DNA from: Paragordius varius
Taxonomy: Eukaryota > Animalia > Nematomorpha
Assembly (NCBI GenBank): GCA_964247055.1
Contig: OZ176054.1
Location: 13,206,001 to 13,270,000, forward strand
DNA length: 64,000 nt
Direction of reading: 5' to 3'
Under the pieces are notes generated by a model, which ran no database searches, was not told where the DNA came from, and saw only the letters and a list, made by a program, of their open reading frames with translations. Shown piece after piece: positions 1 to 57,980 of the stretch. Both the position numbers and the translations under genes were made by a program. Every line of letters begins with the position of its first letter. Position 1 is the first letter of the stretch.

Positions 1-66
1 TATTAAATGACAAACACAAAATGAATTAATCAAAAACTAGCGTTTTATTTTATTAATCAAACAATC

Positions 67-823
67 ATGTCAAATTTTTAAACCTGAAAAGAAACATTTG
101 CGGCACGCATTGTCATCAAGAGAAACGCTGTTAAAGTCTATCGTTTCTGACAGAAACATATGGTTCCAATGAAGTTAATATGCAAGTAAATGGAGACCCA
201 AACTTATAATAACAAAAAACAATTAATAGATGTCTAGGAGCAATGGGAAAGACCAACTTGGTAAATATACATGATTCGTATAAACAAATATCAAAGTGAC
301 TTGTGGAATTCTGCTTTGAAATCCTTTTTGCACCAAATTGGGACGGGGGATAATAAATGAAATTATATTGTAAATCCAAAGTAAAAAAATATGGCCTGCC
401 TTAACCCGATCAATCAGCAATGCAAGGAGAGTGCCTTCTGTGTGGTCAGAGTAGAGCGATATTGTGTAAAATAAATCTTTGAAACCCGGGGAAACTGTTA
501 ATACACAACGCTTTAGACAACAAATGATTAATTTAAGCCATGCATTAAGCGAATACTAGAATTAACCCGAAAACATGGCAAGGGATTTTGTTACATGCGA
601 ATGCTCCATCTAACCCAGAAAAATCTTACCTTAATATCGCTTCAATGAAAAATTCTATCGCGTCCGCTGACCGCTTCTGACCTGAATAAGACTAAAACTT
701 TGCATCAATGGGTGCAAAGAGTTACACATGGGTTTTCGCCAAACAAAATAGTTTTTCTGACACAGCATTTATATGTTACCTAAGAGGACAAAATGCAAAG
801 TTAATGTACACTATTTTAAAGAA
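67..823 (+). mobile_element. Decayed mariner (Mos1/mauritiana-like) transposase remnant
   Basis: Frameshifted fragments match recalled Mos1 motifs: MSNF.PEKKHLRHAL (N-terminus), RCLGAMGK (NRLREMGK), CFEILF (TCEILL), LKPGETVNTQRFRQQMINLSHAL (LKPGETVNTARYQQQLINLNRAL), ILLHANAPS (IFLHDNAPS), FASMG, HSIYMLPKR...HYFKE (GIHKLPERW...KYFE). Multiple stops and deletions; TIRs not resolved. Confidence 0.85.
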
Positions 824-1300
824 TCGATGTTATGTTTTTTTTACAAAAACTTTGACAACATCTCTTATTTTGGTAAATTTAAATTTGATAGCGAGAAAAA
901 TTTTACCACAAAGCATAAAATATGTAATTAAGTGTTAGCGAGGTAAAGAACTGGATGTATCAATCGCCATTTAATATTGCATAGGATTTCATTTGAAAAA
1001 GGGGTTTATGAAACCGACAAGAATTCGATGAGTTCCTAATATGGTTAAGATAGATAAGATTTTACTGATAATACAAAAAAATGGTTAATTAATTCAAATA
1101 TATTACTTGTGTTATGGAATCAATTATTTTTAATTATTGTGTCTCTAACAACAATCATATATAATGCTTATAAAATATATAATTTTTTAGTGATAAACCC
1201 ATCATTAAATGGTTTGAATTCAAGGCTTTGTGAAAGTTTGCATAAAAATTATAATTGAAATTATTCGGAATTTTCGGTACTACACTAATAATCTAATAAA

Positions 1301-2310
1301 ATGTTTCCGATTCCAAATTCCTTATTTGCACGGTATGATATAAACCTAAATTCACACACAAAAATAAACCCTTAAACGCCTTAACAATACGTTATCCACG
1401 CAAACAAATTTTACAAGTTCAAATTGGCCAGTTACCTTAAATACTATCAACACAGCAAGTCAACCATTTATCCCGCTAGGTGGAACGAAAAAACCCATAG
1501 TAGAATGGAAACTGTGGATTATTATTGTTGTAGGATTTTTGGCCATATGCCTCATGATTGGAATCGTGATGTTCATTGTTAGAAAACGGTTTAGTCATCG
1601 TAAAAATTCTAATCAAGATACCATTTACGAAGATATTGATGGTTTAATTATATATCTTAGCAATTTATAAATAAAAATTTCCAGGAATATATCTAATACT
1701 ATATAAATTGGTTCAAGAACATTATATTATCTTTTTCCGTATTTATTATTTAAGTTACTTTCATTAATTAAATATAGGTAAAGAAAACATTTTAGGCAGA
1801 AAATTAACGCGTAAACAATCTAACATAAACCTTTTGTTCGGAAAACAACGGAAATCAGGACAGTCAAAAAATGATAAGACAAGTTTAAATGACTCCGAAC
1901 GAGGTTCAATGGGAAATTATGTGTTTTACTTTTTATACGATGACATATATGTTGAATTTATGGAGTACTTTAACAAGAAGGAACCTAGTAGGACTTTGGC
2001 CTCCGAACTTAGCCCTCTAAGACAAACTCCTAGCCCATCAACTCCAATCCAAAGCGGCAATGATAATATAAATATCGAGTCCCCACCTTTAATTACAAAA
2101 ATGGGTTCCATATCGAATAACCCTATTACTAATCAATTTGTGAATGTTCCTGAAGAAAAACTGCCTGTACATAATGAAACTTTGCCCTTGTTAGAATCTC
2201 ATAGAGATATGGAAAATAAAATATCACCAAATGAAGGTTCAGAAAGTCCAGATGATTCACCATCCCCTACCTCCCCATCTGATAGCCCTGAAAATAATGA
2301 TGAACCATAG
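1301..2310 (+). CDS. Orphan single-pass membrane protein (3-exon model, ~262 aa) with Ser/Pro-rich cytoplasmic tail
   Basis: Exons 1301-1332, 1418-1641 and 1778-2310 join in frame through GT-AG introns. Hydrophobic span LWIIIVVGFLAICLMIGIVMFIV is followed by RKR and IYEDID. The last exon is track ORF 1834..2310. The true start is uncertain; 1921-1977 could be an in-frame intron. Confidence 0.6.
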
Positions 2311-3662
2311 CTTAGTATGATTATGCTTACATGTATTTAAAATAAATCCTAAATGGTTTAAGATTTTTAGGTGGGAAAAATTACGATGAAACAAAAATCT
2401 CTAAGTAGTTTGATCCAAAAATGAGGTGCATATCAATTATATTAAATTAACATAAAATTACACCTTTTTCTATTGGCCAACTAATATAGTGAAACATGCA
2501 GGAATGTGTCATTTTATACATATTCAAACAACAATTATATACAAATATTACATTAATCATATATGTTAAAAAATTATTTTTAATTTACTAATCTAACTGA
2601 ATTTTACCTATTGTCATATTAAAACATATTTTAAACATTAAATTTTGTATATTATTTATGACAAGCACCCTGCATTTTATTTTACTAACACATTTAGAAT
2701 GAGGTTTCTAGAAAATCTCGATAAAGTTAGGTTATAGAAATTTATTAATAAAGGATGGTGCTTTTGGTTTTGGGACTTTAAAGTCATTTATGAAAGTTAT
2801 AGCAACCTTTGCATTTATTATCGCAAATTTAGCACACATGTTAAATGTTTTTATACACAATTAGGCCTAAGCAAAAATTTAACGAATCTAAAAAATATAT
2901 AGCAAATAATGATTTTTTCGAATTAGATTAAAGTCGCACATTTCTAAAATCTGTTAAAATGGGCTAGTGTCATAAAATTTATGTAACCCAAGATAGAACA
3001 AAAAAGCTTTTTTTGGTATTGGGTTTGCAAAAATCTTATCATAATATTCTTTAAGCTTTGATATTTTAGTGGAGTGATCAAAAATAGATTTCCGGGCCGC
3101 ATTTTGAAAAATAAAAACACCTATTCTAAGCGTTATCTATCTCATCATAATTTGGATAGATTTTTCATATTATAGTTTTAGTAATTTATTTACATAATAT
3201 TAAATTATCTGTTATATGATCTAATATCGCACCATATATTCTGAAAAAAATTCAAAATATCTATGGCTTCCTTTAAATTCAGTATGTTTTCACGTTTCAA
3301 CATTTATTTTGCATAAAAAGGTAGTATTGATAATATAATTTAAAATAAATAATTTTAGAAGTAATTCAAAATAGACATGATTGCAACTGTATAGGATAGG
3401 ATTCAAAATAATGAATCTTTGGGATAGCCATAAGAACTATTTGTTAAATATAGTTTTTCATTCACATTAATAAATACTAAGGTAAATTAGAAATAATAAG
3501 CGGATATTTCCAGACAGAATCAATTATTGGTAAAAAATATGAGATTATAAAAGAGGCTGATGGGTTGGCTGCTATTAAATTGTAAAATAAGGGTTAATAA
3601 ATAATACGTTTTTTTTATAGGTTTTCATAATCATCTTTTTAACTTTTATATTTGATTTGTAG

Positions 3663-6600
3663 AAAGAATTGTTTAAAGAAACACCCCCTAGCCCATCAAA
3701 GGGGAATGATGGAAAAATTAGGAATTTTGACTTGAATGATCAATCCATTGCAATTATACCTCGAAATAAAAGCGCAAATAGTAAAACTTTACAATTATCT
3801 TTTTACTTAATATATATATGTATTTTGAGATCAAATTTTGAAATATTTTTGATTATATTTACCAATAAAAATATGTGGAATATATAATAATTAAAATTAA
3901 AAGTATGGGTTTTTTTTATAGAAAGGCATAAAAAAGTTAATAACTCAAGTTTTTTTTTATAAAATCAACCAAATTTTTAGGGAATATAAGTATTCAATTT
4001 ATATAATTACATAAGAAGTAGGCTCAGTTTCATATTCTATTTTATTTATCCAAATCATTTAAACTATATAAAAAAATAGCTAAAAATTTCTTATAAAATA
4101 GATAATATTTGAACCTTTGGGTATAGTAATTAAATTTAAAAATGATTTTTTTTACGCAACATTTATCTTTTTTTCTATAAATTATATCATTATTTTATAT
4201 TAGAATCAAGCTTGAATAATTCCTTATTATTTCCATCAACTCCATTCAAGCTTTTCGGATCTGGTCAGAAAAATGCCAGTTTTATCCCTCAACATTCAAA
4301 TCCAAATAATGTTGAACAAAACTCGAATGGTAGGAATTTGAAAAAATTAAACGTAAAAGCAGGGACATATATTAGTCCAAAAACAACTGGAAATTTTTCA
4401 TTTTCACAAAAATCATCGAATTTCAATGGATCAACAACAATGGATTTCAAAACCTCACCATCAAGAAAGATTTTTAATATTGAAGACAATCCTAGTCATT
4501 TAAGTCTGTCTACCCCGGGTGTTAGGTATTATTGAAATTAATTTGTTCGAAATTGCTTTTTGTTGGCTCACTTTAACGAACGAGTTTATTTGATATGTTT
4601 GAAATTTTTGGGTATAAAAGATAGATATAGATCAAAGCGTGTCCAACACGCGCTTCGAAAATATTTTAGCATCCCTAGAAAAAAAAAATACTCTCTAGCG
4701 ATAATTGTTATCATAGATTTTTTACAGTCCTGTCCTATGGTTGAAACTTATAAAATATCTATACATGTTTATATACTTTTTAAATGAGGGGCGCCTGTCG
4801 GTTTTTTAAGTCAAAAATGCCACCCACGAATTCATTTGTGTTGAACACCCCCTTGTTTAGAGCATTAGGTTATCAATGGAAAACTTTTCAAAAACAGTCG
4901 ATATATATATATGCAAGAATTTTTCATGTAAATCCATATATATGGATGGGAGGAATTGATAATGTAATAATATCACCATCGTTTATATGAGATTTAAATT
5001 TTTTGCAAAAAAGTTTGAAAAACAAAATCTTACATCTTTTCATATATATATATATATATATATATTAGTCGTTATCAATCACTATATCCGAAATTAACTG
5101 TGCCAGACTCAGTCTTTTCATCAGATTCGACTGATTCAAATGCGCTCTTTTCATCTTTCCATCAAGACAACCAAAATCTAGAAAATATTGATAATCGGGA
5201 TTTGTCTTTTATATCGACACGCGACAATTTATCAGGACATTCTGGTATAATAACATATGTATGGCTTGAAAGTTATCGAAGAATTGAAATTTTTACAGTT
5301 TTTGTCGTTTTTTTATCTGATAAAAAGCGATGAATTTTAATGGAAATAGCCTAAAATTAAATGTTTTTGTTCCCTAACTACTCTGTATTTATATAATTTC
5401 TATGGTGTGTAAAAAGAATTTTAAATTGCTAATTTTTTGTCTAAAAAATTGCGATATACACTAAAAAATGAAATTATACGGACAAAATGTAAAAGCATAA
5501 AGACAAAATTTTTTTTTCAAACGAAATTATACTTTTTTAAATCTTATTTTATCCAATAAAACACATTTAATTACAATCGAAAAAATACACAATTGATTGT
5601 GTTACCAATTTACTTTCTATATTATAATAATCTGTATTTAAAAAAAATGAGTTAGTTTTCTTTTTGAAAAAAATATTTGTCTTTATATTATCACGTTTTT
5701 TTACTGTTCTTTTAGAACATGATGGTGGTCACTCCTTTGAACACCAACATAGAAAGCCATGTGCGCAAATCAACTCTAATACGATTGAATTATTTCATCC
5801 ATCTATGGTAGAGGATTATTACCAATCAAATAACTTTTACAGTGAAGACGAGGGCGAAGGTGAATTAATCAGTAGTGATTCTGATGAGGGAAATAATGAA
5901 AGCCCTCCTACCAATAAGAAAAAACGAAGTGGCAGAACACAAAAGACGACGACGACTCCTGGAAAATTGCAAAATTTTAGTGGCTCTAATAGTTCCCTGC
6001 AAAATAGGAACCATCAAGAATCATCGTTGAATGTGAGCAGCTTGCTTAAGAAATTAGCCTTTGAACGGCCCTTGTTTAAATGTACTAAACCTGGGTATGT
6101 TTAACTAATTTTTAAATACTTTATATACCAAATATGGGGTTAAAAAAGTCTATTGTGATTTAATTTTAAATTATTAAGGTATAAATTTGACCATACATAT
6201 AAATTTAACAATTGAGCTTATTATAATAAAAACGCTTATGACAAATCACACATTATTGTAAGAAATAGATTTAATTCATTCCACTTTTGAATATATCATT
6301 TGTTTAGGCATATGGATGTTAATTAATGGTTTTATACTCAATTTTATATTTCACTATATTGTATTTAAAAAGTTAATAACTGGTTGCCTTTTTTAAAAGA
6401 AAAATATTGTCTTTTAGTTTTTACTGTGATATAAATGAAATTCCTAAATACATATCTATGATAATCTTTTTTTTTCTTAGATATACCACGGCCCCAAGCG
6501 TAGAGGAATGTTATGAAATGTATTTAAACAATTTGCGAAAAACTATAATAGATTTTTATGACACCGATCCTGATATGGTGGATAGAGCCAGGAGTCGTCT

Positions 6601-8572
6601 AATGATTAACAATTTTACGATTGAAAGAAAGGTTTTTATTTAATCTTTTTTTTAATTGACAAAATATATAAAATTATCAATCGTATTTGCCATTATAAAT
6701 TTATAAAGATCACTTTAAAATATTAAAATTTTGTTGGTCAAGTGATATAAGTCAAAAACAATGGTGAAAAACTAAGTTTAATGTAAAAACAAATTATGAC
6801 CTTTGTTTAATATTTCGATTTATTTATATATTATACGTATATATATATATATCGCAAAAATTAACCTTATAATAAGAATTTATAATATGTCGAATATTGA
6901 CCGTAAAATATAAATTTTTAATATCAAAATTTTAAACTTAAATTTAGAAAAAACATAGAATAACATATATTATATTTTGGATTATTTTCATATTATATTC
7001 TCTTTGTTTTACTATTGTAGGGTTATGGATCTATCATGTTCCCTGGAGAAATTAATGTTATAGGCCTCAACATTGATAGGAATGGTAAAAAGATTTATTT
7101 ATGCTCTAAATTATAAAATTACCATATTTTTGAAAATTTTAACGGGGAAAAAATTAATTTTATTTTTTTTGAATAATGAAAAAACAATTATAGATAAAAT
7201 TCATTTTTTATAGCCATATATATACATATTTTTAATTCTCAAAGGGTATATAAAATATTCAATAAAAACCATATTGAAATAAAATTAATTCATTTGCAAT
7301 TTTTGTTTTTATTTTTAGTCCTGATTGATGTTAAGGATGTCGAAATTTATCCGGACGAAGTGGAAAAACCCATTTTGGGTGAGGAAATGAGCCGACCAGC
7401 TCTTATAACACTTCACAATACTTATCCAATTGATAAATCAACTTTGCAACCAATTAAGGTAACAATTTTTAGTAGTTTTGTTTTATTAACAAGTTAAAAA
7501 TGTTATAAACTACTACTTGTAAAATAAGAAATCGTTAATGTGTTTTAAAAGGATTATCATAATTTAAAACACATTCAAACTCTAAATAAACCACATATCA
7601 CAGTAAAAATTCAAATTATATTATGGACAAAATGTAAAAATATAAAGATAAATCTTTTTTTTTCATAAAAGACAACCATGTTTTTTAATTTTGATTTTTT
7701 TATTGTGTTTAAAATTGCAAAGTATGGAATAGCGATATATATATATATTGGTAACACAATCAATTATATAGTATATAATTGTAAATAAATAATTTATATG
7801 GCAAAAATTTAGATTTAAAAAAATGGCTGTTTTTTGAAAAATATTTGTTTTTATATTTTTACGTTTTTTCCGTATATGTTCAGTTTTTACTGTGAAAAAC
7901 TTTATGGTTTCGTTAGAAAAACCATATTTTTTAACCAGTTGTGCAATAATAAATTTTAAATTTAACACACAGCGTCAACTTAACTTAAATAAATAAATGT
8001 GAAAAGTAACCATTTTTTTAGAAATTAAACTTTTTTCTTACACCCTAAATTTTATTTAGACTTTGGGTTACGACGCAATCATATATATTTTCTATAAATG
8101 AGGATTTGATATTATATTTTCATTTGATTTTGAATAAAAATTTACAGAGTTTTATATTTTCTAGTTGACTGTTTTATTTTTAAAAAATTGCTTTTATTTT
8201 CTTTTTTTACTATGTGCAAATATATTTATATATGTCTGTGCCTGTATGCAGGAATTGGATAAAATAATTGATTTCAATTATGAAAAACGTTTACGCATCG
8301 CTTGTAACAAAATGGGCGTCAAATTTATCGATTATATTCCACACACTGGGACATGGATGTTTGAGGTAATTTTAGTTTCATTTAAAAAAATTAATTATTT
8401 GAGACAAGTTTTTATTTATTAAAATTTAAATTTTTTTTACATAATATCTGTTTTTAAAGTTTTTTAACCTTTACGCATTTACTATTTTTTTTTCATTTGA
8501 AAAAGTTCGTAATTTATCATTTTTTAAATATATAATATGATGCTTAAATTATTTTAGGTCTCCCATTTTTAA
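3663..8572 (+). CDS. NUP98: Nup98-like nucleoporin, C-terminal half with autoprotease domain (peptidase S59), copy A; 5' FG region absent
   Basis: Phase-consistent exons 3663-3780, 4204-4525, 5069-5244, 5716-6094, 6481-6631, 7021-7084, 7319-7458, 8252-8365, 8558-8572. Protein contains RNLKKLNVK, KPGYTTAPSVEE, INNFTIERKGYGSIMFPG, VEIYPDEVEKPILGEEMSRPALITL, NYEKRL, GVKFIDYIPHTGTWMFEVSHF*, which track the Nup98 APD (TKVGYYTIPS, DFTIGRKGYGSI, KPPVGEGLN, ETGSWVFKVSHF). Confidence 0.88.
5459..5706. mobile_element. MITE family A copy (shared with 26032-26291)
   Basis: TA|CACTAAAAAATGAAATTATACGGACAAAATG ... TTTTACTG long TIRs; the left end carries CAGT>CACT in both Nup98 copies. Confidence 0.75.
7601..7892. 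mobile_element. MITE family A copy
   Basis: CAGTAAAAATTCAAATTATATTATGGACAAAATG ... TTCAGTTTTTACTG termini with internal GACAACCAT / ATGGCTGT inverted motifs. Confidence 0.75.
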
Positions 8573-9367
8573 GCCTCAAATAGATTACTTTATCTGGAAA
8601 AAATAACTCAAAAATCAAACGCAAAGCCTACATAAGAAACAGCCTTCTCTATTATATTAATGTTATGATAAATACTATCCATTTTATATAAAAAATAAAT
8701 TGTTTAAATGCGGACATATACTAATGTTTATATTTATTGAAATCTTTTCATAAATATTTTTATTGTTTTCTTTGCTCATTTTCTATATAAATATGGTTTG
8801 TCATGTTTAAACCGATATTCATAATAAAATAAATATATATCTAGTATATAATGACTTTAAAACACAATGTTATAATAGTTATGTGATGTGGGGGTGTAGG
8901 GGTAAAATAAATAAAAATAACTAATTTATATATACAGGAAACCTCTTCATTTTTTATAAAAAAAATATGAATTTTATCAATTATTTTTAAAAAAACCCAA
9001 ATAATTAAAACTTAGATATGAAAAAATATAGTTTATTCTGTTGAAACTATACAAGTGTGCTTAAATTATCTTTTCAAATTCAAATTTTTGACTAATTTTT
9101 CACAAAAAAAGGTTTGACTGTTATACATATTAAAAAGTGACTGCTCTTGGCGGTTTTACATTTTACTAATGATTATTATAAAAAAAGATACATATATATA
9201 TAAATATAAGGGGCGAAAATCAAAAGAGATTTTTTCTACACTATACATATAAATTAGAAAAAAAAGTTAAAAGTAATGGAAAATGTGACTGACATGACAA
9301 CTCTTTTATATGTTTTTGAAACTTGGACAATAAAAAGGGTGGTTTTTTTCCCCACGTTTAGTTTTGT

Positions 9368-11256
9368 TTAAGACATGAATTGCATGATTGCTCGCAGTGC
9401 ATACAGATTGGCTGCTTGGATTTTGGCATCCATAATCATGAGATTAACATGAACCTAAATATAATAAATCAAACAGAAAATATTAAAAGTTTTTTCACTT
9501 AATTTTTAAAATTTGTTTTTAATACAGTAAAAAATTAAAATTATACGGGTAAAACGTAAAACTATAAAAAAATGTTTTTTTCCCAACAATACCTTTTTAA
9601 AACCTTTATTTTTCTTATATAAACTAAACTATTCAATTATAATTGTAAAAAATAATTCATGTGTTATTGATATAGATAGATCTCTCCATACTTTGGATTA
9701 AACAATGAATTTTAAGATTTAAAAAATAAGATTATCTTAAACAAGAAAATATTTGTCTTTATATCAATAAAACTCAATTAATCTAGTTGAAAGTTAATTA
9801 GAGTCATAAAAAATCGTAAAACCTACATGAGTTAATGTATTTGTATTATATTCTTTAAGCTCACAAAAATACTCCCTAAAAATATATGTATGTTTTTAAC
9901 TTTAATGTAACAAAAAATAAAATATCTATCTACCTTTTCAGATTCTAGGAAATCGCGCATAAATCCTTCCTTAATGCAAAACTCTAAGGAACTCAAAGTA
10001 CTGCTACTCCTTTTACTTAAAGGGGAAATTTTTGTCCCTTCATTTCCGACGCCGACGCCATTGTTAGACTTTTTACCCCGTTTTTTCGTGGTGCTGGTCG
10101 TTGAATGGGTTTGACCAGATTTTTTATTCTTGGAATATATATGTAAAAAGATTAAAAATTAAATATTAATTTGATAAATATCAAAAGTTAAAAAATAATG
10201 ATTTTTTTTTTTCATAAAAATACCCAACTATTTTATTTCGCAAACAAAGAACGATATGTTACCTATAGAGCAAAAAAATTAATTTTGTCCAAATAAAATA
10301 TTTGCCTTTTACTTTTTGTGTTTTTACTGTTTAATATAAAGTCTTGAAAGCGAAAAAAAAGTATTTTTTTTGAAAATTACACTAAATTTTTAAATCCTCA
10401 ATTATATTTAAGCTAAAATTATTAAATTAAAATAAGGTGTACTAACAAAATTTACATATCTATTTCATATTTTAAATGGATTTTATATATATATATATAT
10501 ATATATAAATTATATTTTTTCTTATTTATATATACGAAAAACTACAAGTCTTTTAAAGTTTTATTTCAAAACTTTTTTTTGAAAATCTTACTGTATTCGC
10601 GTTGCGATAAGGTGGATTAATAGAAGAATGTTCAATTTTTGTTGCAAAAAATTGTTGGTTGTTGTTATTGAGGGATGTTTCAGGAACCGATTCAATTCTA
10701 AATGATAATTATTTATATTTTATGATAAAAAATTGATATAAATTATTAATTAAACTGGATTAAATTATATATATATATATATATATTCACTCTTTATACG
10801 GATATATATGAAACATAGGGTATTTTTTCCAAAAAAAGCCAATCAAACAAACTTTAAATCTTTTCCTGTATAATAAATTAATTGTGTTACAACTTTATAT
10901 TTTTTATTTTATGCTTTGCAATGTAAATATTAATTTTATAAAATATCAGGTGTTTTAAAAAGTATCTCGAGTTGTTTAAAAAACAAAATGTTTATCTTTA
11001 TATTTTACGTTTTTCCATAGCAAAATTGCAATCTTTACTGTAGTATGTAATTTGGTAAAAATTGATATATACTATTGAGAAAAACTAATCACATTATGTT
11101 AAATATATTCAGTTTAAAACTTTTTCATTAATATAAAATAAAGATTGTTAAATAATTTATACGACCTGAATAATTTGGGCGATTTTTTCTCCATATTATT
11201 CCCATTTTTTTCATTTTTATTGTCTTTGTTGTGAATTACAATGTTGTAACAAGCGT
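9368..11256 (-). pseudogene. SESN: 5'-truncated duplicate of the Sestrin 3' end (last four exons)
   Basis: Exons 11166-11256 (partial), 10592-10697, 9934-10128, 9368-9454 parallel 31961-32112, 30768-30873, 30172-30351, 29606-29692. Ends [28 protein letters not shown]. Homology stops at 11256, with an in-frame TGA two codons upstream of the break. Confidence 0.85.
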
Positions 11257-16699: not shown

Positions 16700-18920
16700 A
16701 AAAGTGTTTTTGTGGTTAAGCAAGTGTTTTTGTGGTTTAGAAAGAGTTTTTGTGGTTAAGAAAGTGTTTTTGTGGTTTAGGAAGAGTTTTGTGGTTAAGA
16801 AAGTGTTTTTGTGGTTTAGAAAGAGTTTTTGAGGTTTTAAAAAAGTTTTTACAGTTCAAAAAGAGTTTTTGCGGTTTTAAAAGAGTTTTTACGGTTTTAC
16901 AAAAGTTTTTGCGGTTTTACAAAAGTTTTTGCGGTTTTAAAAGAGTTTTTACGGTTTTACAAGAGTTTTTACGGTTTTACAAAAGTTTTTGCGGTTTAAA
17001 AAGAGTTTTTGCGGTTTTAAAAGAGTTTTTACAGTTTATTTACGGTTTTAAAAGAGTTTTTATGGTTTTAAAAAAGTTTTTATGGTTTTAAAAGAGTTTT
17101 TACAGTTTTAAAAGAGTTTTTGCGGTTTAAAAAGAGTTTTTGCGGTTTAAAAAGAGTTTTTGCGGTTTTTAGGGAGTTTTTGCGGTTTTTAGGGAGTTTT
17201 TGCGGTTTTTAGAGAGTTTTTGCGGTTTTTAGAGAGTTTTTGCGGTTTTTAGAGAGTTTTTGCGGTTTTTAGAGAGTTTTTGCGGTTTTTAGAGAGTTTT
17301 TGCGGTTTTTAGAGAGTTTTTACGGTTTTAAAAGAGTTTTTATGGTTTTAAAAGAGTTTTTATGGTTTTAAAAGAGTTTTTGTGGTTTAAAAAAAGTTTT
17401 TGTGGTTTAAAAAGAGGTTTTGCGGTTTAAAAAGAGTTTTTTCTGCGGTTATAAAAGAGTTTTTTCTGCGGTTATAAAAGAGTTTTTTCTGCGGTTTTAA
17501 AAGAGTTTTTTCTGCGGTTTTAAAAGAGTTTTTACGGTTTTACAAGAGTTTTTACAGTTTATTTACGGTTTAAAAAGAGTTTTTGCGGTTTTAAAAAGAG
17601 TTTCTGTGGTTTTAAAAGAGTTTTTTCTGCGGTTTTAAAAGAGTTTTTTCTGCGGTTTTAAAAGAGTTTTTTCTGCGGTTTTAAAAGAGTTTTTACAGTT
17701 TATTTACGGTTTTAAAAGAGTTTTTATGGTTTAAAAAGAGTTTTTATGGGTTAAAAGAGTTTTTGCGGTTTAAAAAGAGTTTTTACGGTTTTAAAAGAGT
17801 TTTTTCTGCGGTTTTAAAAGAGTTTTTTCTGCGGTTTTAAAAGAGTTTTTTCTGCGGTTTCAAAAGTTTTTTCTGCGGTTTTAAAAGTTTTTTCTGCGGT
17901 TTTAAAAGAGTTTTTGCGGTTTAAAAAGAGTTTTTACGGTTTTTAGAGAGTTTTTACGGTTTTTAGAGAGTTTTTACGGTTTTTAGAGAGTTTTTACGGT
18001 TTTAAAAGAGTTTTTACGGTTTTAAAAGAGTTTTTACGGTTTTAAAAGAGTTTTTACGGTTTTAAAAGAGTTTTTACGGTTTTAAAAGAGTTTTTTCTGC
18101 GGTTATAAAAGAGTTTTTTCTGCGGTTATAAAAGAGTTTTTTCTGCGGTTATAAAAGAGTTTTTTCTGCGGTTTTAAAAGAGTTTTTTCTGCGGTTTTAA
18201 AAGAGTTTTTGCGTTTTAAAAAGAGTTTTTGCGTTTTAAAAAGAGTTTTTGCGTTTTAAAAAGAGTTTTTGCGTTTTAAAAAGAGTTTTTGCGTTTTAAA
18301 AAGAGTTTTTGCGCTTTAAAGAGTTTTTACAGTTTTTAAGGAATTTTAGCAGTTTAAATATAGTTATTGCGGTTTAATAGAGTTACAATTTAAATATAGT
18401 TTTAGACAGTTTTTGAGGAATTTTAGCGGTTTTAAAAGAGTTTTAGTTATTGCGGTTCTAAAGAATTTCAGCAGTTTTTAAGGAATTAGGAGTTTGAAAG
18501 AGTTTTTCCGGTTTAAAAAAGGTTTTTACGGTTTTAAAAAAGTTTTTACGGTTTAAAAATTGTTCTTAAGGTTTAAAAATTGTTGTTAAGGTTTAAAAAG
18601 AGTTGTTAAGGTTTAAAAAGAGTTGTTAAGGTAAAAGAGTTGTTAAGGTTTAAAAAGAGTTTTTATGGTTTAAAAATAGTTTTAGACAGTTTTTGAGGAA
18701 TTTTAGCAGTTTGGTTTTAAAAGAGTTTTTACGGTTTTAAAAGCGTTTTTATGGTTTAAAAAGAGTTTTTACGGTTGTTTTTATTACAGTTTAAAAATAG
18801 TTTTAGACAGTTTTTGAGGAATTTAGCAGTTTTAAAATAGTTTTTACGGTTTTAAAAGAGTTTTTACGGTTTTAAAAGAATTTTTACGTTTTTAAAAGAG
18901 TTTTTACGGTTTAAAAAGAG
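16700..18920 (+). repeat. Minisatellite, ~20-23 bp unit (AAAAGAGTTTTTGCGGTTTT), with degenerate flanks at ~12800-14900 and ~18920-19500
   Basis: Homogeneous tandem units with variant blocks (AGAGAGTTTTTGCGGTTTTT; AAAAGAGTTTTTTCTGCGGTTTT; AAAAGAGTTTTTGCGTTTTA). Confidence 0.95.
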
Positions 18921-20074
18921 TTTTTACAGTTTTTGAAGAATTTTAGACAGTTTTTGAGCAATTTTAGACAATTAGGAATTTTAGCAGTTTTTAAAGAATT
19001 TTACTAGTTTTTAAGGAATTTGCAGTTTTTTAAAACAATTTAGCAGTTTTTTGGATAATTTTAGGCGTTTTTAAATAATTTTACAAGTGTTAAACAATTT
19101 TTTCAAGTTTTAAAAGAATTTAAGCAGTTTTTAAAGAATCTTAGCAGATTTTAAAGAAATTTACTAGTTTTTAAGGAATTTACAAATGTTAAACAATTTT
19201 TTGAAGTTTTAAAAGAATTTAAGCAGTTTTTAAAGAGTTTAACGAGTTTTTAATTTTAGCAGCTTTTAAGATAATTTTACTAGTCAAATAATTTTAGCAG
19301 TTTTTAATCAATTTTAAGCGTTTAAAAGAGTTTTTGAGGTTTTCAAAGAATTTTAGAATTTTTAAATAATCTTAGAAGCAGTTTATAAAATTTGTGCGTT
19401 TTTAGATTTTAAGAAGTGTTAAAAAAAATTTGAGGTTTAAATCGAATTTTAGCAGATTTTAAAGAATTTTGCTAGTTTTTAGAGAGTTCTTTAACGAATT
19501 ATAGCAGTTTTAAAATAATTTTTATAAAATAATGGCCTTTTTAGAGAATATTAAAATTTTTTCTCTTTTAGAAATTTTCTAGTAATTTTACTTTTTAAAT
19601 ATAAAAACTGCGCTTTTTTACGAAACATACCTTTTAAGTATTCACAAAAATTAGCCCTATTTAAGAAAACTTTACTGCTTTTTAAGTGAGCGCTTTCAGA
19701 ATTTTAAGAAACATACCGCTTTTTTAATAAATTACAAGATATATTAGCGCTATAAACCATTAAGAAGTTTTAGTGTTTTCTTGATACCGCTTTTTATTAT
19801 TTTTTATTAAAAAATTTTAGTAAATTTTAAAAGTTAGAACTTTTAACACGTGTTTAAATACTATATTTTACAACTTGAAGGATTAAAAAGTTTGAATATT
19901 GGAAATGGGTGATATTTTAGATATAAAAATTCATCTCTAATATATTTGAATGTAAAAATATTTTATACAGACTTACTCAATATTTAGTTAAAAACATTTT
20001 ATATTTAAACAACTAATTGAATAAGTAATAAATTTATTTTATTCAACACGCATGCACCATAAAAAATATAAACA

Positions 20075-22429: not shown

Positions 22430-24845
22430 TTTTTGAAATATTTTTCTAAAAATATTTTTATTATTAAAATATAATTTTACAAAACTTTTTATATTATAAA
22501 TTTCGTATAGATATTTTAATGACTCACGTAGAAATATTTAACACTTAAGTTAATTATTCAAGTGATAATTACAGAGCTGTGCTAGTTTCAGTAAAGATTA
22601 ACATTGGATAAAAAAATATTTCTGTAAGAACTTATACTTATATACTTGTTTAAATATTATATAGTTATTTATCGATAATATATCTATTAGAAAGTTATTC
22701 TTATTAATCTAATGTGTGATTAATGCTCAAGGATAAACTATTCAATAAATTTATTGCATACAAATCCCTATCTGTAATCAGAGATACTTCTAATAGTATG
22801 TTTATTACAAATTAGACTTAACACGTTTTAAAGTCTGATTTTATTAGGAATATTTATTGTTTAATTGAAAACTTATTATAACTTAAACATATATTTATGG
22901 CATACTTTAAAACTTTAAATTTAATGATTAGACATAATATATCAAAATAAACGTAAAATTTAACAATTAAAATAAAGATAATATCCATGTTAAAAGACTA
23001 TCACTTCAGTGCTAATATTTGATTTGAACGATTCAATATTATATTTATATTATAGTGTTTATAACCAATATATCCCAATATTTAAAAATATAAAGAATTT
23101 CAATTATTATATCGTATAATGCGGGTTATAGGTACTTTAAGGTTTTAGGTATTATGAGCAAGGGTTAGGGATGTTTAATTTGCTTAAAGAAGTCCGTATG
23201 CTCTTTGTTTAATGTAAAGTTGTAATAAAATTTGTTCTGATAGATGAGCATTGGTTATAATTCTAAGCAAAGTTATATTTTATAAATAATACATCCTATA
23301 TTGATATTATAAATTAGTTTTTTTGCTTAAATATGTTAGAAATTATTGATAACTATAAAACATTTTAGCATGTATTTTTTGTAATTGACTTTATATACCA
23401 TCGCATCTAAAATATATATTTAATACCAGGATGTAGTAAATGACCAATATGCCAATTAGACCACTTATGATTTTAAATTGGAAAATAGGTCTAAATAAAA
23501 TAAATGTATTTTAATAAATTCTAACTCTAATATAAGTATATACTGATCAAAATGTAAAAAATATTTATCACTCAATAATATATAATAAAATATATTTATT
23601 ACCTTTTATAGTATTCAATCATAAAAATTTACATAATTTTTTAGACTCCTCTTTGCCTAATACTAATATTGCGATTCTACAATGTTTATTTGATTATTTA
23701 ATTTAATAAAATTTATTTAAATATACAGGAAATATATAAAAGTTCCACAACAAAACCACCTATGAATTTAAATTTTGTATAAATACTCAATAAAAATTTT
23801 TTATCAATTTATAAAATAGCAAATAATATAAAAGGATAGTCAAAGATTTTAGGCTTATGTTGAAAGATTAGAAATAGGTCGTATCTTAAGATGTCGGCAC
23901 ATTGCCTTATGGCACGCTTCCACAGATTATCTCTCAAAATTTTCAATCTTGGTTTTATTTACAAAATATAAATATCTAGATTCTGGATTGAAAAGTGCTT
24001 TTGAAAGCTGGTATTATATAGTCAAAGTATATAACTAATGACACTAAAATATTTTAATATATATGTGCATACGATATTTGCCTAAAATATATATTTTTTT
24101 AAGTCTTGGCTTACAAATCAGTTTAATTTACCAAATAATTAATTATGTTTTTAATTTTAATTCAGCTCTATATCATAAAGCAAATTATTAGGATATATTA
24201 AATTAATTTTAAAATTAAGGTAGTAATATCTGAAATAAATACACAATATAAAAAAATTACATCTAAGAATTTACTTAATTTTCCATTTTAATTTAGTTAT
24301 TTTAAAAATATATTCAATTTTTTATCAAGAGACACGTTACTCTATCAACTATCATACTTTCTGTGGTAATAAAACTAATCTTTCGCTTAAATTTATTTAA
24401 AATTTTCCATATAATATCTTATTTCGTTTATATCAGGTGGAACTCACACATGCATAAATTCAAACATTTTTAATGCAAGCCACACTTCTTTTTGCCAATC
24501 ACCTTTACTCGCGGAATTTTTAATTACATCTCATTTATTTATCAATAGTTCCCAAATATTAACAAATTAACATTTATATTTATGAAAAATTCAAATTTGT
24601 ATAATGATGAGGAAAATAAAAGAAGAATGGTAATCATTATTCCTATGTTTATTAATATTAAAAAATAACTTTATCAACATATATTATAACTAATTCGTTT
24701 CTTTGCAATGTTCAAATTGCTTGTTTATATTTTCTAATATACTTACTGCAATTAATAATTACCAATTAATTGATAAATTTACATTGTAATATTTTTACAG
24801 GTTCAAGGGCTTTTAATTGCATTACATTTTAATTATATTTAACAG

Positions 24846-27800
24846 ATCTGGACAAAAAAATGTCAGTTTTATCCCTCAACATTCAAATCTAAATAATGTT
24901 GAACAAAACTCAGATGGTAGGAATTTGAAAAAATTAAACGTAAAAGCAGGCGCATATATTACTCAAAAGACAACTGGAAATTTTGCATTTTCACAAAAAT
25001 CATTGAATTTCAATGGATTAACAACAATGGATTTCAAAACCTTACCATCAAGAAAGATTTTTAATATTGAAGATAATCCTAGTCATTTAAGTCTGTCTAC
25101 CCCGGGTGTTAGGTATTATTGAAATTAATTTGATCAAAATTGCTTTTTGTTGGCTCACTTCAACTAACGAGTTTATTTATCATGTTTGAAATTTTTGGGT
25201 ATAAAAGATAGATATAGATCAAAGCGTGTCAAACACGCGCCTCGAAAATATTTCCAGTGATAAATTAAAAAAATACTGTCTAGCGATAATTGTTATCATA
25301 GATTTTTTGCAAGTTCTATGGTTGAAACTAATAAAATACCTATAAATGTCCATATACTTTTTAAATGAGGGGCGCTTGTCGGTTTTTTAAGTGAAAAATG
25401 CCCCCCACGAATTCATTTGTGTTGGACACCCCCTTGTTTATGCGCATTAGGTTGCCAATAGAATACTTTTCAAAAACAGTCGACATATATATGCAATCAA
25501 ATTTTTCATATAAAACCCATATATATATATAAATGGGAGGAATTGATAATGTAATAATATCACCATCGTTTATCTGAGATTAAATTTTTTGTAAAAAGTT
25601 TGAAAAACAAAATTTTACATCTTTTCATATATATATATCTTAGTCGTTATCAATCACTATATCCTAAATTAACGGTTTCCGACTCAGTCTTTTCAACAGA
25701 TTCGACTGATTCAAATGCGCTCTTCTCATCTTTCCATCAAGACAACGAAATTCTAGAAAATATTGATAAGCGGGATTTGTCTATTATATCGACACGTGAC
25801 AATTTATCTGGACATTCTGGTATAATAACATATGTATGGCTTGAAAGTTATCGAAGAATTGAAATTTTTACAGTTTTTGTCCTTTTTTTATCTGATAAAA
25901 AGCGATGAATTTTAATGGAAATAGCCTAAAAAACGATTTTTGTTCCTTAACTACTCTGTATTCATATAATTTCTATGGTGTGTAAAAAGAATTTAAATTG
26001 CTAATTTTTTTGTCCAAAAAATTGCGATATACACTAAAAATTGAAATTATACGGATAAAATGTAAAAGCATAAAGACAAATTTTTTTTTCAAAAGCAATC
26101 ATACTTTTTTAAACCTTATTTTATCCAATAAAACACATTTAATTAAATCGAAAAAAATACACAATTGATTGATTGTATCAATTTACATTTCTATATTATA
26201 ATTTGTAGTTTAAAACAATGAGTTAAAAAGTATGGTTGGTTGTCTTTTTGAAAAAAAATATTTGTCTTTATATTTTCACATTTTTTTACTGTCCTTTTAG
26301 AACATGATGGTGGTCCCTCCTTTGAACAACATCAAAGAAAGCAATTTGCGCAAATCAACTTTAATACAATTGAATTATTTCATCCATCTATGGTTGAGGA
26401 TTATTACCAATCAAATAACTTTTACAGTGAAGACGAGGGCGAAAATCAATTAATCAGTAGTGATTCTGAAAATGAAAGTCCTAAAAAACGAAGTGGCAGA
26501 ACTCAAAAGACGACGACTCCTGGAAAATTGCAAAATTTTAGTGGCTTTAATAGTTCCCTGCAAAATAGGAACCATCAAGAATCATCGTTGAATGTGAACA
26601 GCTTGCTAAAGAAATTAGCCTTTGAACGGCCCTTGTTTAAATGTACTAAACCTGGGTATGTATTACTTGATAGTTTTTTCTAAAATTTGGCGTTAAAAAG
26701 TTTATTATGATTTAATTTTGAATTCTTTAAGGTATAAATTTATACATATAAAATTAATAATTGAGTTTATTATAATAACGCTTATATCACACATTATTGT
26801 AACTTTTAAATATATCATTTGTTTAGGCATATGGATGTAAGTTAATGGTTTTCTCAATTTTATATTTCACCGTATTGTATTTAAATAAGTTAATAACTGG
26901 TTGCCTTTTTTTAAAAAATATTGTCTTTTAGTTTTTACTGTAATAAAAAATCGAATTACTAGAAACATATCTATGATAATATTTTTTTTTCTTAGATATA
27001 CCACGGCCCCAAGCGTAGAGGAATGTTATGAAATGTATATGAGCAATTTACGAAAAACTATAATAGATTTTTATGAAACCGATCCTGATATGGTGGATAA
27101 AGCTAGGAATCGCTTGATGATTAACAATTTTACAATTGAAAGAAAGGTTTCTCTTTAATCTTTTTTTTTCTTTTTTTTGGTAAAAAATTCAAAAATATTA
27201 ATCGTATTTGAAGTATTTAGATTGGATTTTATTAGTTATAAATTAGGTTTAAAATATTAAAATTTATATTGGTTAAGTGATATAAGTATAAAATTTTAAA
27301 TAGTTGTATGTAATTTGTGTTAGTGTAAAAGGAGTGTTTCAGTTTTATTATTTATATTTTTTGGTTCAACATTTGGATTTTTAAATAACATCTCCTTTGG
27401 TTTAATATAAATTGGTATATTTTAATCTGTAAAAAACCCAACACAAGCCTTTAAATTCCTATACAAATTATAATTTGATGAAAATTAGCCTTAAAATATT
27501 CTTTTAAATGACTAAAACAATATAAAACTTTAAAGTATAAATGTCTATATTTAATTTTTTTAAATTAAAAAAGAATCTATATGTATATATTATTTTGTAG
27601 GGTTATGGATCTATCATGTTCCCTGGAGAAATTAATGTTATAGGCCTCAATATTGATAGGAATGGTAAAAAGATTTATTTATACTTTCAAACTTTATTAA
27701 AATTACCATATTTTTGAAAATTTTAACGGGGAAAAAATCAATTTTATTTTTTTTGAATAATGAAACAAAAACAATTATAGATAAAATTCATTTTTTATAG

Positions 27801-28885
27801 CCATATAAACATATTTTTAATTTAAATCTCACAAGGGATTGTATAAAATATTCTTCAATAGACACCATATTGAAATAAAATTAATATATTTGTATTCTTT
27901 TTCGTTTTTATTAGTCCTGATTGATGTTAAGGATGTCGAAATTTATCCGGACGAAGTCGATAAACCCATATTGGGTGAGGAAATGAACCGACCAGCTCTT
28001 ATAACACTTCACAATACTTATCCAATTGATAAATCAACTTTGCAACCAATTAAGGTACTAATTTATTAAATTAAAAGTAGAAATTACAGTAAAAACTGAA
28101 ATTATACGGACAAAACCTCAAAAAAGATAAATATTTTTTTTCTAGAATCTTGATTTGTTCCAATATAACTCATTGTTTTAAACTGCAAAATACGAAATTG
28201 ATATGTTTATTGGTAAAACAATTAATTATTTATTTACAATCGTAGGAAAAATTAAGAAAAAATGATGGTTGTCTTTCGTGTAAATATATTTGTCTTTATA
28301 TATTTTGTCCGTGTAATTTCAGTTTTTACTGTATACCTATGTCAGGATGCATAAAGTTAGAAAATACCCAAATATTTAATAAAAATAGCTTAGTCACATT
28401 AATAACAAAGGTTTGTGATAATGGGGTTAACCTCCTATCATTTATATTAATGTTTTTCTATTAAATATTGTGGACAGATAAAAGACCTTTTAATTTTAAG
28501 TTAACGGATTTTTGTTTTTAAAATATAGTTTATTTTATGTTGTTAATAAATATAAATATAGGAATTGGATAAAATAATTGATTTCAATTATGAGAAACGT
28601 TTACGCATCGCTTGTAAGAAAATGGGCGTCAAATTTGTCGATTATATTCCACACACTGGGACATGGATGTTTGAGGTAATTTTAGTTTCAGATCAATTAA
28701 AAAATTTTTTGATAAATTATTTGAGATAATTAAAATTTAATTTTTTTTTACATGATATCTGTTTTTAAAGTTTTTTAACCTTTACGCATTAATTTTTTGT
28801 TTCAATTCGAAAAAGTTCGTAATTTATCATTTATAAATATATATATTATATGATGCTAAAATTATTTTAGGTATCCCATTTTTAA
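24846..28885 (+). CDS. NUP98: Nup98-like nucleoporin, C-terminal half with autoprotease domain, copy B; 5' end unresolved
   Basis: Exons 24846-25112, 25644-25819, 26301-26655, 26996-27146, 27601-27664, 27915-28054, 28562-28675, 28871-28885 have the same phases as copy A and, from the 176-nt exon onward, the same lengths except one in-frame 24-nt difference. Ends GTA TCC CAT TTT TAA (VSHF*). Confidence 0.88.
26032..26291. mobile_element. MITE family A copy (orthologous to 5459-5706)
   Basis: Same termini and same intron position, ending 9 nt before the next exon (AG acceptor included). Confidence 0.75.
28087..28331. mobile_element. MITE family A copy
   Basis: TA|CAGTAAAAACTGAAATTATACGGAC ... 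GTCCGTGTAATTTCAGTTTTTACTG|TA, i.e. clean TIRs with a TA target duplication. Confidence 0.85.
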
Positions 28886-29605
28886 GCCTCAAAGATTACT
28901 TTATCTGGAGAAAATGACTCAAAAAAATCACAAGCAAATTCTACATAAGAAACAGTCTTCTCTATTATATTAATGTTATGATAAATATCCATTTTATAAA
29001 ATAAATAAATGTTTAAATGCGGACATATACTAATGTTTATATTTATTGAAATCTTTTCATAAATATTTTTATTGTTTTCTTTGCTCATTTTCTATATAAA
29101 TATGGTTTGTCATATTTAAACCGATATTCATAATAAATATATATATTATATAACTAATAAATTATATATAATGACTTTAAAACACAATGTTAAAATAAAT
29201 AGTTATGTGATGTGGGGGTGTAGGGGTAAAATACATAAAAATAACTAATATCATTTTTTAGGAATTATTTTAGAACCCAAATAATTAAAACTTAGATATC
29301 AAAAAAAAAGTTTATTCTGTTGAAACTATACAAGTGTGCTTAAATTATCTTTTCAAATTCAAATTTTTGACTAATTTTTTTTTCAAAAAGAGGTTTGACT
29401 GTTATACATATTAAAAAGTGACTGATCTTCGCGGTTTTACATTTAAACTAATATAAAAAAGGATATATATTAATATAAGGGGCGAAAATTAAAGAGAATT
29501 TTTCTATACATTAAGTTAAAAGTAATAGAAAATGTGACATCTTTTATAAGTTTTTGAAACTTGGACAATAAAAAGGGTAGTTTTTTCCCCCACGTTTAGT
29601 TTAGT

Positions 29606-32600
29606 TTAAGACATGAATTGCATGATTGCTCGCAGTGCATAAAGATTGGCTGCTTGGATTTTGGCATCCATATTCATGAGATTAACATGGACCTAAATAC
29701 AATTAGATTAAACAAAAAATAATAAAAGTTTTTTCACTAAATTTTCAAAAATCGCTTTTAATACAGCAAAAAATTAAAATTATAACGGGCAAAATGTAAA
29801 ACTATAATGAAAAATGTTTTTTTCCCAACCATACCTTTTTAAAACCTTCTTTATTTTTCTTATATAAACTAAACTATTCAATTTTAATTGTAAAAAATAA
29901 TTCATGTGTTATTGATATAGATAGATCTCTCCATACTTTGGATTAAACAATGAGTTTTAAAATTTAAAAAATATGTAAGATTGTTTTAAACAAGAAAATA
30001 TTTGTCTTTATATCAATAAAACTCATTTAATCTAGTTGAAAGTTAATTAAAGTCATAAAAAATCGTAAAACCTACATGACTTAATATATTATTATATTCT
30101 TTAAGAAATTCACAAAATTACTCCCTAAAAATATATGTATGTTTTTTACTTTAAAAAAATAAAATATCTACCTTTTCTGATTCTAGGAAGTCGCGCATAA
30201 ATCCTTCCTTAATGCAAAACTCTAAGGAACTCGAAGTACTGCTACTCCTTTTACTTAAAGGGGAATTTTTTGTCCCTTCATTTCCGACGCCGTTAGACTT
30301 TTTACCCCGTTTTTTCGTATTGGTAGAATGGGTTTGACCAGATTTTTTGTTCTTGGAATATAATATGTAAAAAGATTAAAAATTAAAATTAGTTTGATAA
30401 ATATCAAAAGTTAAAAAATAATGAATTTTTTTCCATAAAAAACCCCGACTATTTTCTTATTTCACAAACTAAGAACGATATGTTATTTATACAGAAAAAA
30501 AATTAATTTTGTCCAAATAAATGTTTCATATATAATCAGAAAGTGAAAAAAAAGTATTTTTTCAGGAAATTAAACGAAATATAAAATTCTTCAATTATAT
30601 TTAAACTAAAATTGTTAAATGTAAAATAAGGTATAATAACTAAATTTGCTTCTCTATTCCATATTTTAAATGGATTTATATTATAAAAAGTATATCTTAT
30701 ATATTTATAGGGAAAAACTACAAGTCTTTTAGTGTTTTATTTCAAAAAAAAATTTTTAAAATCTTACTGTATTCATGTTGCCATGAGGTGGATTAGTAGA
30801 AGATTGTTCAATTTTTGTTGCAAAAGATTGTTGCTTGTTCTTATTGAGAGAAGTTTCAGGAACCGATTCAATTCTAAATAAATTTATATTTCATGGTAAA
30901 AATTGATATAGACTTTTAAAAATAGTGGTTTTATTATGTATATATATTACATTTACATTTCTAATTCACACTTGAACAATTCAAATACACCTTGAACAAT
31001 TGAAATTTACCCTAAAAATAAAATATGTCTTTTTTAAGGTTAAAAAATTTACTTTTAATTTTTTTCATATTTTTAAAATATGAAATTCTGTTTAACATTT
31101 ATACAATACTGAAAAAATAATTAACTATGGTCAAATTATATTCTTCATATTAAGCCCGAAAATTCATAATTTATTTTTAGAGTGGTTTGAAATGGCTGAC
31201 GGTGACTTTGAATTGTTCAAGGATGAATTTGAATTGTTTAAGGTGAAATTAGAATTGATGGTATATATTCAGTTTAAATTTTTTCGTTTAATATACAATA
31301 AAAATTGGAATTATACGGACAAAAAGTAAAAAACATAGAAACTAATATTTTTTCAAAAAACACCCATAATTTTTTTAAGGTTAATTTTTCCAATATAAAT
31401 TATTTGATAAAAATTAATTGTGTTACTACTTTACATTTCTATTTTATACTTTACAATGAATTCATATAAAAAAATCAAGTGTTTTAAAAAGTATTTCGGG
31501 TTGTTTAAAAAATAAAATATTTATCCTTAGGTTTTTACGTTTTGTCCATAGTATAATTTCAGTTTTTACTCTAGTATATACTTTGACAAAAGATATATAT
31601 ATAAACTATTGAAAAAAACTAACCTAATTATGTTAAATAGATATCAGTTTAAAACTTTTTGCATTAATTTTAATATAAAACAAATTCTTTTTTAACGTTT
31701 TTCCATAGTAAAATTGCAATCTTTACTCTAGTATATAGTTTGGTAAAAAATTGATATAAACTATTGAGAAAACTAATTTGATTATGTTTAATATATTCAA
31801 TTTAAAACTTTTTGCATTTTTATAAACATAAAAAGACTTTGTAAAAATTGATATAAATACTATTGCCAAAAACTAATCAGATTATGTTAAATATATTCAG
31901 TTAAAACTTTTTGCATTTTTATTAAGATAAAAAGACTTTGTTAAAATAATTTCATATCACCTGAATAATTTGGGCGATTTTTTTCCCTTATTTTCCATTT
32001 TATCATAATTTTCATTTTTATTGTCTTTGTTGTGAATTACAATGTTGTAACAAGCGTCACAAAAGGTCGGAGCTAAAATACGTTGCGGATAACACGTTAA
32101 AGTTTTAATGACCTAGAAATATTAAACATTAATTTAAATTTAAATTTTATGGTAAAAATTGAAATTATCCGGACAAAACGTTAAAATATATAGACAAATA
32201 TTTATATCTAAAAAACAACCATACTTTTTAAAACCTGAATGTTTCCCATATAAGCTACTTTGTTATAATTGTAAAATATAGAATTGATTGTGTTAGTATT
32301 TTATATTACTCTATTTCACACTTTGCCATTTAAAACAATGAGTTATATTGAAATAATTAACGATTAAAAAGTATGGTTGTCTTTTAGAAAAAAATACTTG
32401 TCTTTATATTTTCACGTTTGCTCCGTATAATTTCAGTTTTACAACGTTATTGATGACCTAACAATAAAGCACAATACAATGTTTAATTTGAATTTAAATT
32501 CATTCCTCTTGTGGTAAAACTTAAATTATAATAAAACTAAATTAAAATCACTTATATCCACACAATTTTTTGGCGATATAAATTTTTATTGTTTTTTTTT

Positions 32601-57887: not shown

Positions 57888-57980
57888 TATTTTTGTTTAA
57901 AATGTATTAGTCGCTTTAACTAACATGATTGGGATAATGGGATTTTGTGAAAATATTGACTGTTTCTAATTCAGTGTATA

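Follow-up and report, generated by a model that had tools for sequence, protein, structure and literature searches.

Two tandem genes of the nucleoporin Nup98 type, referred to here as copy A and copy B, lie on the forward strand of a 64-kb stretch of Paragordius varius DNA (contig OZ176054.1, positions 13,206,001 to 13,270,000). This whole stretch, AT-rich eukaryotic DNA with about 25% G+C, is called the window below. Self-cleavage of Nup98 needs a His-Phe-Ser tripeptide, and in human cells correct targeting to the pore is held to depend on the cleavage (PMC4483485). Both copies in the window are predicted to end in a 15-nt exon encoding Val-Ser-His-Phe followed directly by a stop codon (VSHF-stop).

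Two Nup98-type paralogues in the window

Copy A was modelled as a chain of eight exons comprising 452 codons and a stop; all junctions are AG/GT and agree in phase, and no earlier stop interrupts the frame (Table 1). Exon 6 alone places the gene in the Nup98-96 autopeptidase S59 family (PF04096, Nucleoporin2), scoring 33.6 bits where the cutoff is 28.4; a further 16 bits come from exon 7 (8252-8365). The exons also matched Nup145N, NUP98 and Nup116 chains in the PDB. A local hidden Markov model (HMM) of the autoproteolytic domain (APD) was spanned from position 8 to position 142 by four exons in each of the two copies, and the same model found no third APD copy in the 64-kb window. Candidate upstream exons compared with the linker and phenylalanine-glycine (FG) end of the Gordionus relative described below were not significant (p 0.37, 0.38, 0.04 and 0.09; sensitive tblastn and shuffled Smith-Waterman alignment).

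Copy B likewise comprises eight exons with AG/GT throughout and no internal stop, and the coding length is at least about 450 codons in copy A and at least about 425 in copy B. Homology between the copies begins at 4258, inside the first recognisable exon of copy A, and the copy A frame stays open for 112 nt past this boundary, to the AG at 4202-4203. The 14 kb 5′ of copy B, back to the end of the duplicated segment of copy A, is occupied by repeats and, at 16.7-19.5 kb, by a 20-nt satellite, and copy B is predicted to be a 5′-truncated paralogue. We rejected the possibility that the two copies are an assembly duplicate or haplotig, given their 13-16% divergence, their many indels and the presence of parts of the locus in DNA contigs of four studies.

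Table 1. Coordinates of the Nup98-type copies and of the dispersed repeat in the window.
Feature	Position	Strand	Evidence or remark
Candidate upstream exon of copy A	3663-3782	+	uncertain; read from sequence; phase-compatible with 4204; no significant Gordionus similarity
Copy A exon 1, first recognisable (linker)	4204-4525	+	open frame from 4146; AG at 4202-4203; one LFG
Copy A exon 2 (linker)	5069-5244	+	open reading frame retained in both copies; phase-compatible AG/GT junctions
Copy A exon 3 (acidic/Ser-rich linker, end ...ERPLFKCTKPG)	5716-6094	+	tblastn to residues 771-887 of the Gordionus protein
Copy A exon 4 (APD start, GYTTAPS...)	6481-6631	+	APD HMM; splice sites and frame
Copy A exon 5 (GYGSIMFPGEINV..., APD)	7021-7084	+	tblastn to residues 922-948 of the Gordionus protein; APD HMM; AG/GT and frame
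Copy A exon 6 (APD core)	7319-7458	+	PF04096; Nup145N/NUP98 PDB chains; local APD HMM, E 3e-17
Copy A exon 7 (C-terminal part of APD, end ...TGTWMFE)	8252-8365	+	PF04096; human NUP98
Copy A last intron	8366-8557	+	GT..AG, 192 nt; same codon position as the last intron of Gordionus
Copy A terminal mini-exon	8558-8572	+	V-S-H-F + TAA (8570-8572), at the autoproteolytic Ser position
Duplicated segment, copy A side	4258-10778	+	matches 24845-30947 at 84-87% identity (self-blastn); begins within exon 1, extends ~2.2 kb beyond the stop
Copy B gene span	24846-28885	+	8 exons
Copy B exons	24846-25112, 25644-25819, 26301-26655, 26996-27146, 27601-27664, 27915-28054, 28562-28675, 28871-28885	+	
MITE-like repeat	5454-5700, 7600-7893 (inverted), 9490-9764, 26027-26284, 31291-31580, 32129-32444		
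MITE-like repeat, continued, plus others	52981-53268, 54967-55251, 55523-55778, 56052-56339, 57609-57892, 57977-58262		

The terminal mini-exon and its counterpart in Gordionus

An earlier note on this DNA had read the last exon of copy A as GTC TCC CAT TTT TAA, and the bases at 8558-8572 agree: an acceptor (...ttattttag) lies directly 5′ of them, exon 7 (translation ELDKIIDFNYEKRLRIACNKMGVKFIDYIPHTGTWMFE) ends ...ACA TGG ATG TTT GAG followed by gtaatt, and the intervening intron is of the GT..AG type. Since exon 7 aligns with residues 841-875 of human NUP98 (phmmer against PDB chains, E about 3e-6), E-V-S-H-F corresponds to human residues 876-880; in its mature form (chain 7r5j_U0) NUP98 has 880 residues. 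In this alignment the TAA of copy A stands where human NUP98 has Ser881, which acts as nucleophile in the His-Phe-Ser site, as the earlier note had proposed in placing the stop at the scissile bond. By base-composition arithmetic, the chance of an AG followed by V-S-H-F and a stop is ~2e-8 per position. Left unspliced, the frame would run 18 codons further into unrelated sequence; it is the predicted spliced reading, and not intron retention, that restores the conserved motif. We found no alternative V-x-H-F-S exon within the 64-kb window.

Copy B has the same ending (GTA TCC CAT TTT TAA, 28871-28885). In both copies the His and Phe are present, whereas the Ser (or Thr) nucleophile is absent and TAA stands instead, so that the stop directly follows the Phe aligned with human F880 and no partner is fused to it, the ending of a stand-alone Nup98 paralogue. 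With the Ser nucleophile missing and the product predicted to stop at the very Phe that autoproteolysis would otherwise make terminal, self-cleavage would be neither possible nor needed. As far as the sequence can tell, this upholds two further proposals of the earlier note, that autoproteolysis is abolished and that the gene encodes a genetically pre-cleaved product; the 2-base indel that it had described between copies A and B just past the stop is also present.

The stop codon was further examined in contigs of four DNA sequencing runs (four studies), compared with the window over 3600-9000. All four runs cover 8487-8667, and among the differences listed, with 137 weaker ones left out, none falls in 8558-8572; the nearest listed are a 2-base deletion at 8580 and an A>G change at 8599, both past the stop. 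The TAA at 8570-8572 is thus backed by DNA contigs, which is support rather than proof. Relative to single contigs with a perfect match (about 245), summed contig depth was 4-13x in exon bins and about 2.5-3x in unique intron bins, which hints at further copies of the exons, contig depth being a figure not equal to copy number.

Relatives of the window copies were sought exon by exon, and the full HMMER search, which used exon 6 (46 residues), gave 48 hits with identities of 58% at most. Among full-length proteins the best match came from Gordionus sp. m RMFG-2023, a protein of 1037 residues annotated as 'nuclear pore complex protein Nup98-Nup96-like' (P0002; one identical sequence under two submissions, XP_065313475.1 and CAK9290400.1), which contains 29 FG motifs and a GLEBS motif (PF21240, PF13634) as well as an autoproteolytic domain and ends ...TGTWIFEVSHF, without a Nup96 part. 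Its gene extends over 12.7 kb and is full length (FG, GLEBS and APD); like the window, the locus is AT-rich (28.7% GC), and like both window copies the gene has a VSHF-stop mini-exon of 15 nt, and the intron before it occupies the identical codon position. Its penultimate exon ends ...TGG ATA TTC GAA followed by gtattt, an intron of 766 nt follows, and the last exon reads GTA TCA CAC TTT TGA (22696-22710 of the Gordionus locus, L001). In tblastn comparisons the Gordionus protein showed 57-81% identity to the window copies across the APD exons, whereas all other queries showed 26-58%; copy A exon 7 was 68-74% identical to residues 994-1034. On these comparisons Gordionus is by far the nearest database relative of the window copies. 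When residues 750-1037 of the Gordionus protein served as a word-search query, the sole matches were that protein, one from a fish and one from Logan, with no other nematomorph protein among them; the 85-residue open frame enclosing exon 7 gave no candidate in a search of the same kind.

The two loci differ in several respects. The Gordionus stop is TGA and those of the window copies are TAA; the Gordionus gene is full length with FG and GLEBS parts, whereas the window copies match just residues ~750-1037 (the last ~290); and the window copies are tandem paralogues whose APD is interrupted by one extra intron. The extra intron, at 6632-7020 in copy A, separates ...ERK from GYGS..., a region that is a single exon in Gordionus (L001 20429-20614, residues 887-948). 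The window copies and Gordionus share the positions of their last three introns.

The presence of the VSHF-stop mini-exon in Gordionus means that it is older than the split between Gordionus and the species of the window. The earlier note had called for a survey of related species for HF-stop versus HFS, and Gordionus has HF-stop. The note had also presented this ending as a feature of copy A, which did not hold, as it is shared with copy B and with Gordionus, so it predates the duplication and is an inherited lineage trait and not an event in copy A. An origin of the stop by TCA>TAA is not deducible, because the Gordionus stop is TGA. Open frames of other animals read through the same position (e.g. 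...VFK-V-S-S-L...), and the comparison suggests that the intron 5′ of V-x-H-F is ancient and that the lineage-specific change is the stop after Phe.

Comparable endings were seen in unverified gene models from unrelated lineages. A transcript-derived protein of the red alga Bangiopsis (P0049, 880 residues, 29 FG) ends ...AVQHF and a partial protein of Mesorhabditis spiculigera (P0042) ends ...CVDHF, both likewise at HF, while a protein of Adineta vaga (P0009, 609 residues) has an autoproteolytic domain with no FG motif upstream of it but keeps HFT and a 9-residue tail. A Logan protein (P0001, 583 residues) carries two autoproteolytic domains of the Nup98 type in tandem: HF-R-Y-F comes after the first, and the second closes the protein at its C-terminus (...KVEHFR).

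Coding constraint and interpretation of the copies

Copy A, which the earlier note had called Nup98, appears not to be a canonical one: its coding sequence covers just the distal linker and the autoproteolytic domain, and FG and GLEBS coding is absent from the window. By tblastn, window matches to the Gordionus protein were confined to residues ~750-1037 (distal linker and APD), with none to residues 1-750, and the GLEBS motif (residues ~110-165 of the Gordionus protein, PF21240; Rae1/Gle2-binding) had no match in the window at E up to 1. No FG-rich frame, defined as a 150-residue frame window with at least 4 FG motifs, was found in the six frames of the 64 kb except in a minus-strand satellite at 41 kb, and the single GLFG in the window is isolated. 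Searches for Nup96 (PF12110), by tblastn from several Nup98-96 proteins and with an HMM of Nup96 trained on 11 proteins, yielded nothing beyond noise (E >3) in the window and in the Gordionus locus, and the 10 kb 3′ of the Gordionus gene contained no called gene and no Nup96 homology; the earlier note's statement that no Nup96 remnant follows the stop fits both loci. Nup96 would necessarily be encoded by its own separate gene.

The two copies show clear signs of coding constraint. Between them we counted 37.5 nonsynonymous differences at 992 nonsynonymous sites and 29.5 synonymous differences at 253 synonymous sites, a ratio of nonsynonymous to synonymous divergence (dN/dS) of 0.31 (Fisher p 1e-5), and divergence was 5.4% of aligned bases in exons as against 8.7% in well-aligned introns (p 0.001). 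The exons contain 3 indels in 1254 nt (9, 12 and 3 nt, in exon 3), all multiples of 3 and in frame, whereas the introns contain 33 in 1431 nt, just 6 of them multiples of 3. At the intron rate ~24 frame-breaking exon indels would be expected; none was observed, and therefore both copies have been maintained as reading frames since their separation (dS about 0.13). Polarising the amino-acid changes with Gordionus left few usable sites (2 derived in A, 1 in B), and the constrained copy was not assignable from these.

Separate Nup98 and Nup96 genes are already known. Animals and fungi make both proteins from one gene, whereas plants encode them in separate genes and have expanded Nup98 in copy number (PMC8685260). 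Plant Nup98a and Nup98b thus resemble the window copies in that Nup96 is encoded separately, but they keep FG repeats (PMC7318766) and belong to a different kingdom in which the separation was independent. In S. pombe, Nup98 and Nup96 are functional when made from separate loci (PMC4483485), so the separated arrangement is viable in principle. Nup116 and Nup100 of S. cerevisiae are also Nup98-type proteins with the same C-terminal domain and are unfused, only Nup145 being a fusion (PMC4283134), but they have long FG domains, with GLEBS in Nup116, and these fungal paralogues coexist with the self-cleaving Nup145. PDB chains of the Nup116 C-terminal domain extend 41-43 residues past the stretch aligned with exon 6, similar to the 42 residues of copy A. 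If these constructs reach the natural C-terminus, Nup116 would end at about the VSHF position. The short NUP98 isoform of human and S. pombe is a Nup98 without Nup96 made from the same 5′ exons, but it carries HFS and a tail, must self-cleave and is non-functional in S. pombe in an uncleavable form (PMC4483485), whereas the window copies have neither tail nor nucleophile. What appears to differ here is that the lineage is an animal one and that the copies are FG-less yet selected. The HF-stop ending is visible in the public Gordionus protein record, and we found no paper describing it.

We consider it probable that copies A and B are expressed, FG-less paralogues with an inherited ending that leaves the protein cleaved from birth. 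Coding constraint and the identical junction in the Gordionus gene models lend indirect support to a spliced transcript that would join 8365 to 8558. The VSHF-stop exon would be the normal 3′ end of Nup98-type genes in a lineage whose nearest database relative is Gordionus. Past the conserved intron, the ancestral exon would have started V-x-H-F-S-K-Y-G and continued into Nup96, and it would now consist of four codons and a stop, the protein being made with the same C-terminal Phe that self-cleavage yields elsewhere. As the C-terminus is made directly, the autoproteolytic domain could act only as a docking module, and it would have been retained in this predicted role, with the Nup96 N-terminus or Nup88 (Nup82) at the pore as the partners to be expected of a stand-alone paralogue of the Nup116/Nup100 type, and not as a protease. 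Copies A and B would be tandem paralogues that inherited HF-stop without the FG-repeat and GLEBS parts, and their reading frames would have been maintained by selection since the duplication. With expression and 5′ ends presumed, the product would be an FG-less pore-docking protein that occupies, or competes for, the anchoring sites of Nup98 on the scaffold while adding no barrier-forming repeats.

Several observations weigh against this explanation. Neither a start codon nor a first exon was found for copy A or copy B in the window sequence, some linker exons lack significant similarity to Gordionus, and an in-frame TAA (24814-24816) lies 30 nt 5′ of the homology boundary of copy B, whose coding must therefore begin in an exon further upstream or at a Met within the frame. 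The stretch, or part of it, is matched by seven public runs from four studies, none of them recorded as RNA, and none of the sampled locus words was present in five small presumed-RNA runs. Intact frames could also be preserved with the help of gene conversion from a functional parent copy, and the FG exons of copy A may precede the window start. Missing start codons and missing RNA would fit copies that are silent or decaying partial 3′ duplicates of one functional stand-alone Nup98 elsewhere, with an HF-stop that was inherited and has no function at this locus. So would the position of the homology boundary (4258/24845), which falls inside or just before an exon, so that at least copy B is 5′-truncated, and the richness of the region in satellites, MITE-like repeats and segmental duplication. 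This is unlikely, however, in view of the dN/dS, the ~24 expected frame-breaking indels of which the 1254 exon bases contain none, and the 14 splice junctions, all of which are intact in both copies.

It is similarly improbable that copy A is the 3′ part of a full-length Nup98 whose FG and GLEBS exons lie outside the window, either before position 1 or misassembled, so that only HF-stop would be unusual. The full-length Gordionus orthologue, the open frame beyond the A/B boundary, the one LFG, with its weak resemblance (p 0.09) to the stretch where the FG domain of Gordionus ends, and a possible assembly problem, raised by the 100% identity of 1-3582 to 58490-62071, speak for such a gene; against it, the interval from the window start to copy A contains a separate plus-strand gene (100- and 180-codon open reading frames, stop at 2307), and an explanation of this kind is inapplicable to copy B. 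That human and S. pombe make Nup98-only and Nup98-Nup96 mRNAs by alternative splicing (PMC4483485) raises the question of whether the VSHF-stop exon is merely one alternative terminal exon, with another isoform joining 8365 to a distant HFS exon and Nup96. This we regard as very unlikely, as the 55 kb past copy A contain neither a V-x-H-F-S exon nor Nup96 homology, the 10 kb after the Gordionus gene contain no Nup96 homology either, and the next plus-strand gene past copy A is copy B.

The explanation by inherited HF-stop in FG-less paralogues can be taken further, although we regard the following extension as rather doubtful. The ancestral Nup98-Nup96 gene may have split into three kinds of gene: one elsewhere for the FG/GLEBS part, one for Nup96 itself, and a tandem family of FG-less, born-cleaved linker-plus-APD genes kept by selection, which would act as repeat-free plugs or adaptors at Nup98 docking sites and tune pore composition. 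An animal lineage that reaches the same mature C-terminus by means of a stop codon would constitute a natural experiment in which the cleavage chemistry is dispensable if a free ...HF end exists, with the His-Phe pair apparently retained for structure or docking rather than catalysis. Expression of the FG-less copies, if it occurs, would make them natural Nup98 anchor domains without barrier repeats, offering a handle on how occupancy of Nup98 sites is regulated.

Other features of the window

At 1-3582 and 58490-62071 the window contains the same 3582 bases with 100% identity, at a spacing of 58,489 bases, which reflects an overlap in the assembly or else a tandem segmental duplication of very recent date. 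Within this segment, 1368-2307 (+), repeated at 59857-60796, contains the 100- and 180-codon open reading frames (ORFs) mentioned above, which resemble a single-pass membrane protein with a Ser/Pro/acidic tail and had no Pfam family match; a related ORF, with YDDI in its sequence, is found at 39684-39971 (-). A satellite at 16722-19485 separates copy A from copy B; it has a unit of 20-23 nt (consensus AAGAGTTTTTACGGTTTTAA), about 110 copies and a strong G-over-C skew (0.4). A repeat of ~250-300 bases resembling a miniature inverted-repeat transposable element (MITE) occurs in both orientations, including inside two copy A introns (Table 1), and its summed contig depth in one DNA run (X1) was ~1,000-2,700x that of single-copy contigs, indicating a very abundant element.

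Exons of a sestrin gene (PF04636) were identified at 41243-44008 (-), with a 138-nt tandem repeat at 42096-42367, and exons of an Arf-family small GTPase (PF00025, E 1e-12 to 1e-14), which we take to be Arl8-like by impression, at 62885-63850 (-). A tRNA-Pro(TGG) gene at 49646-49717 (+) was the sole Rfam match in the window.

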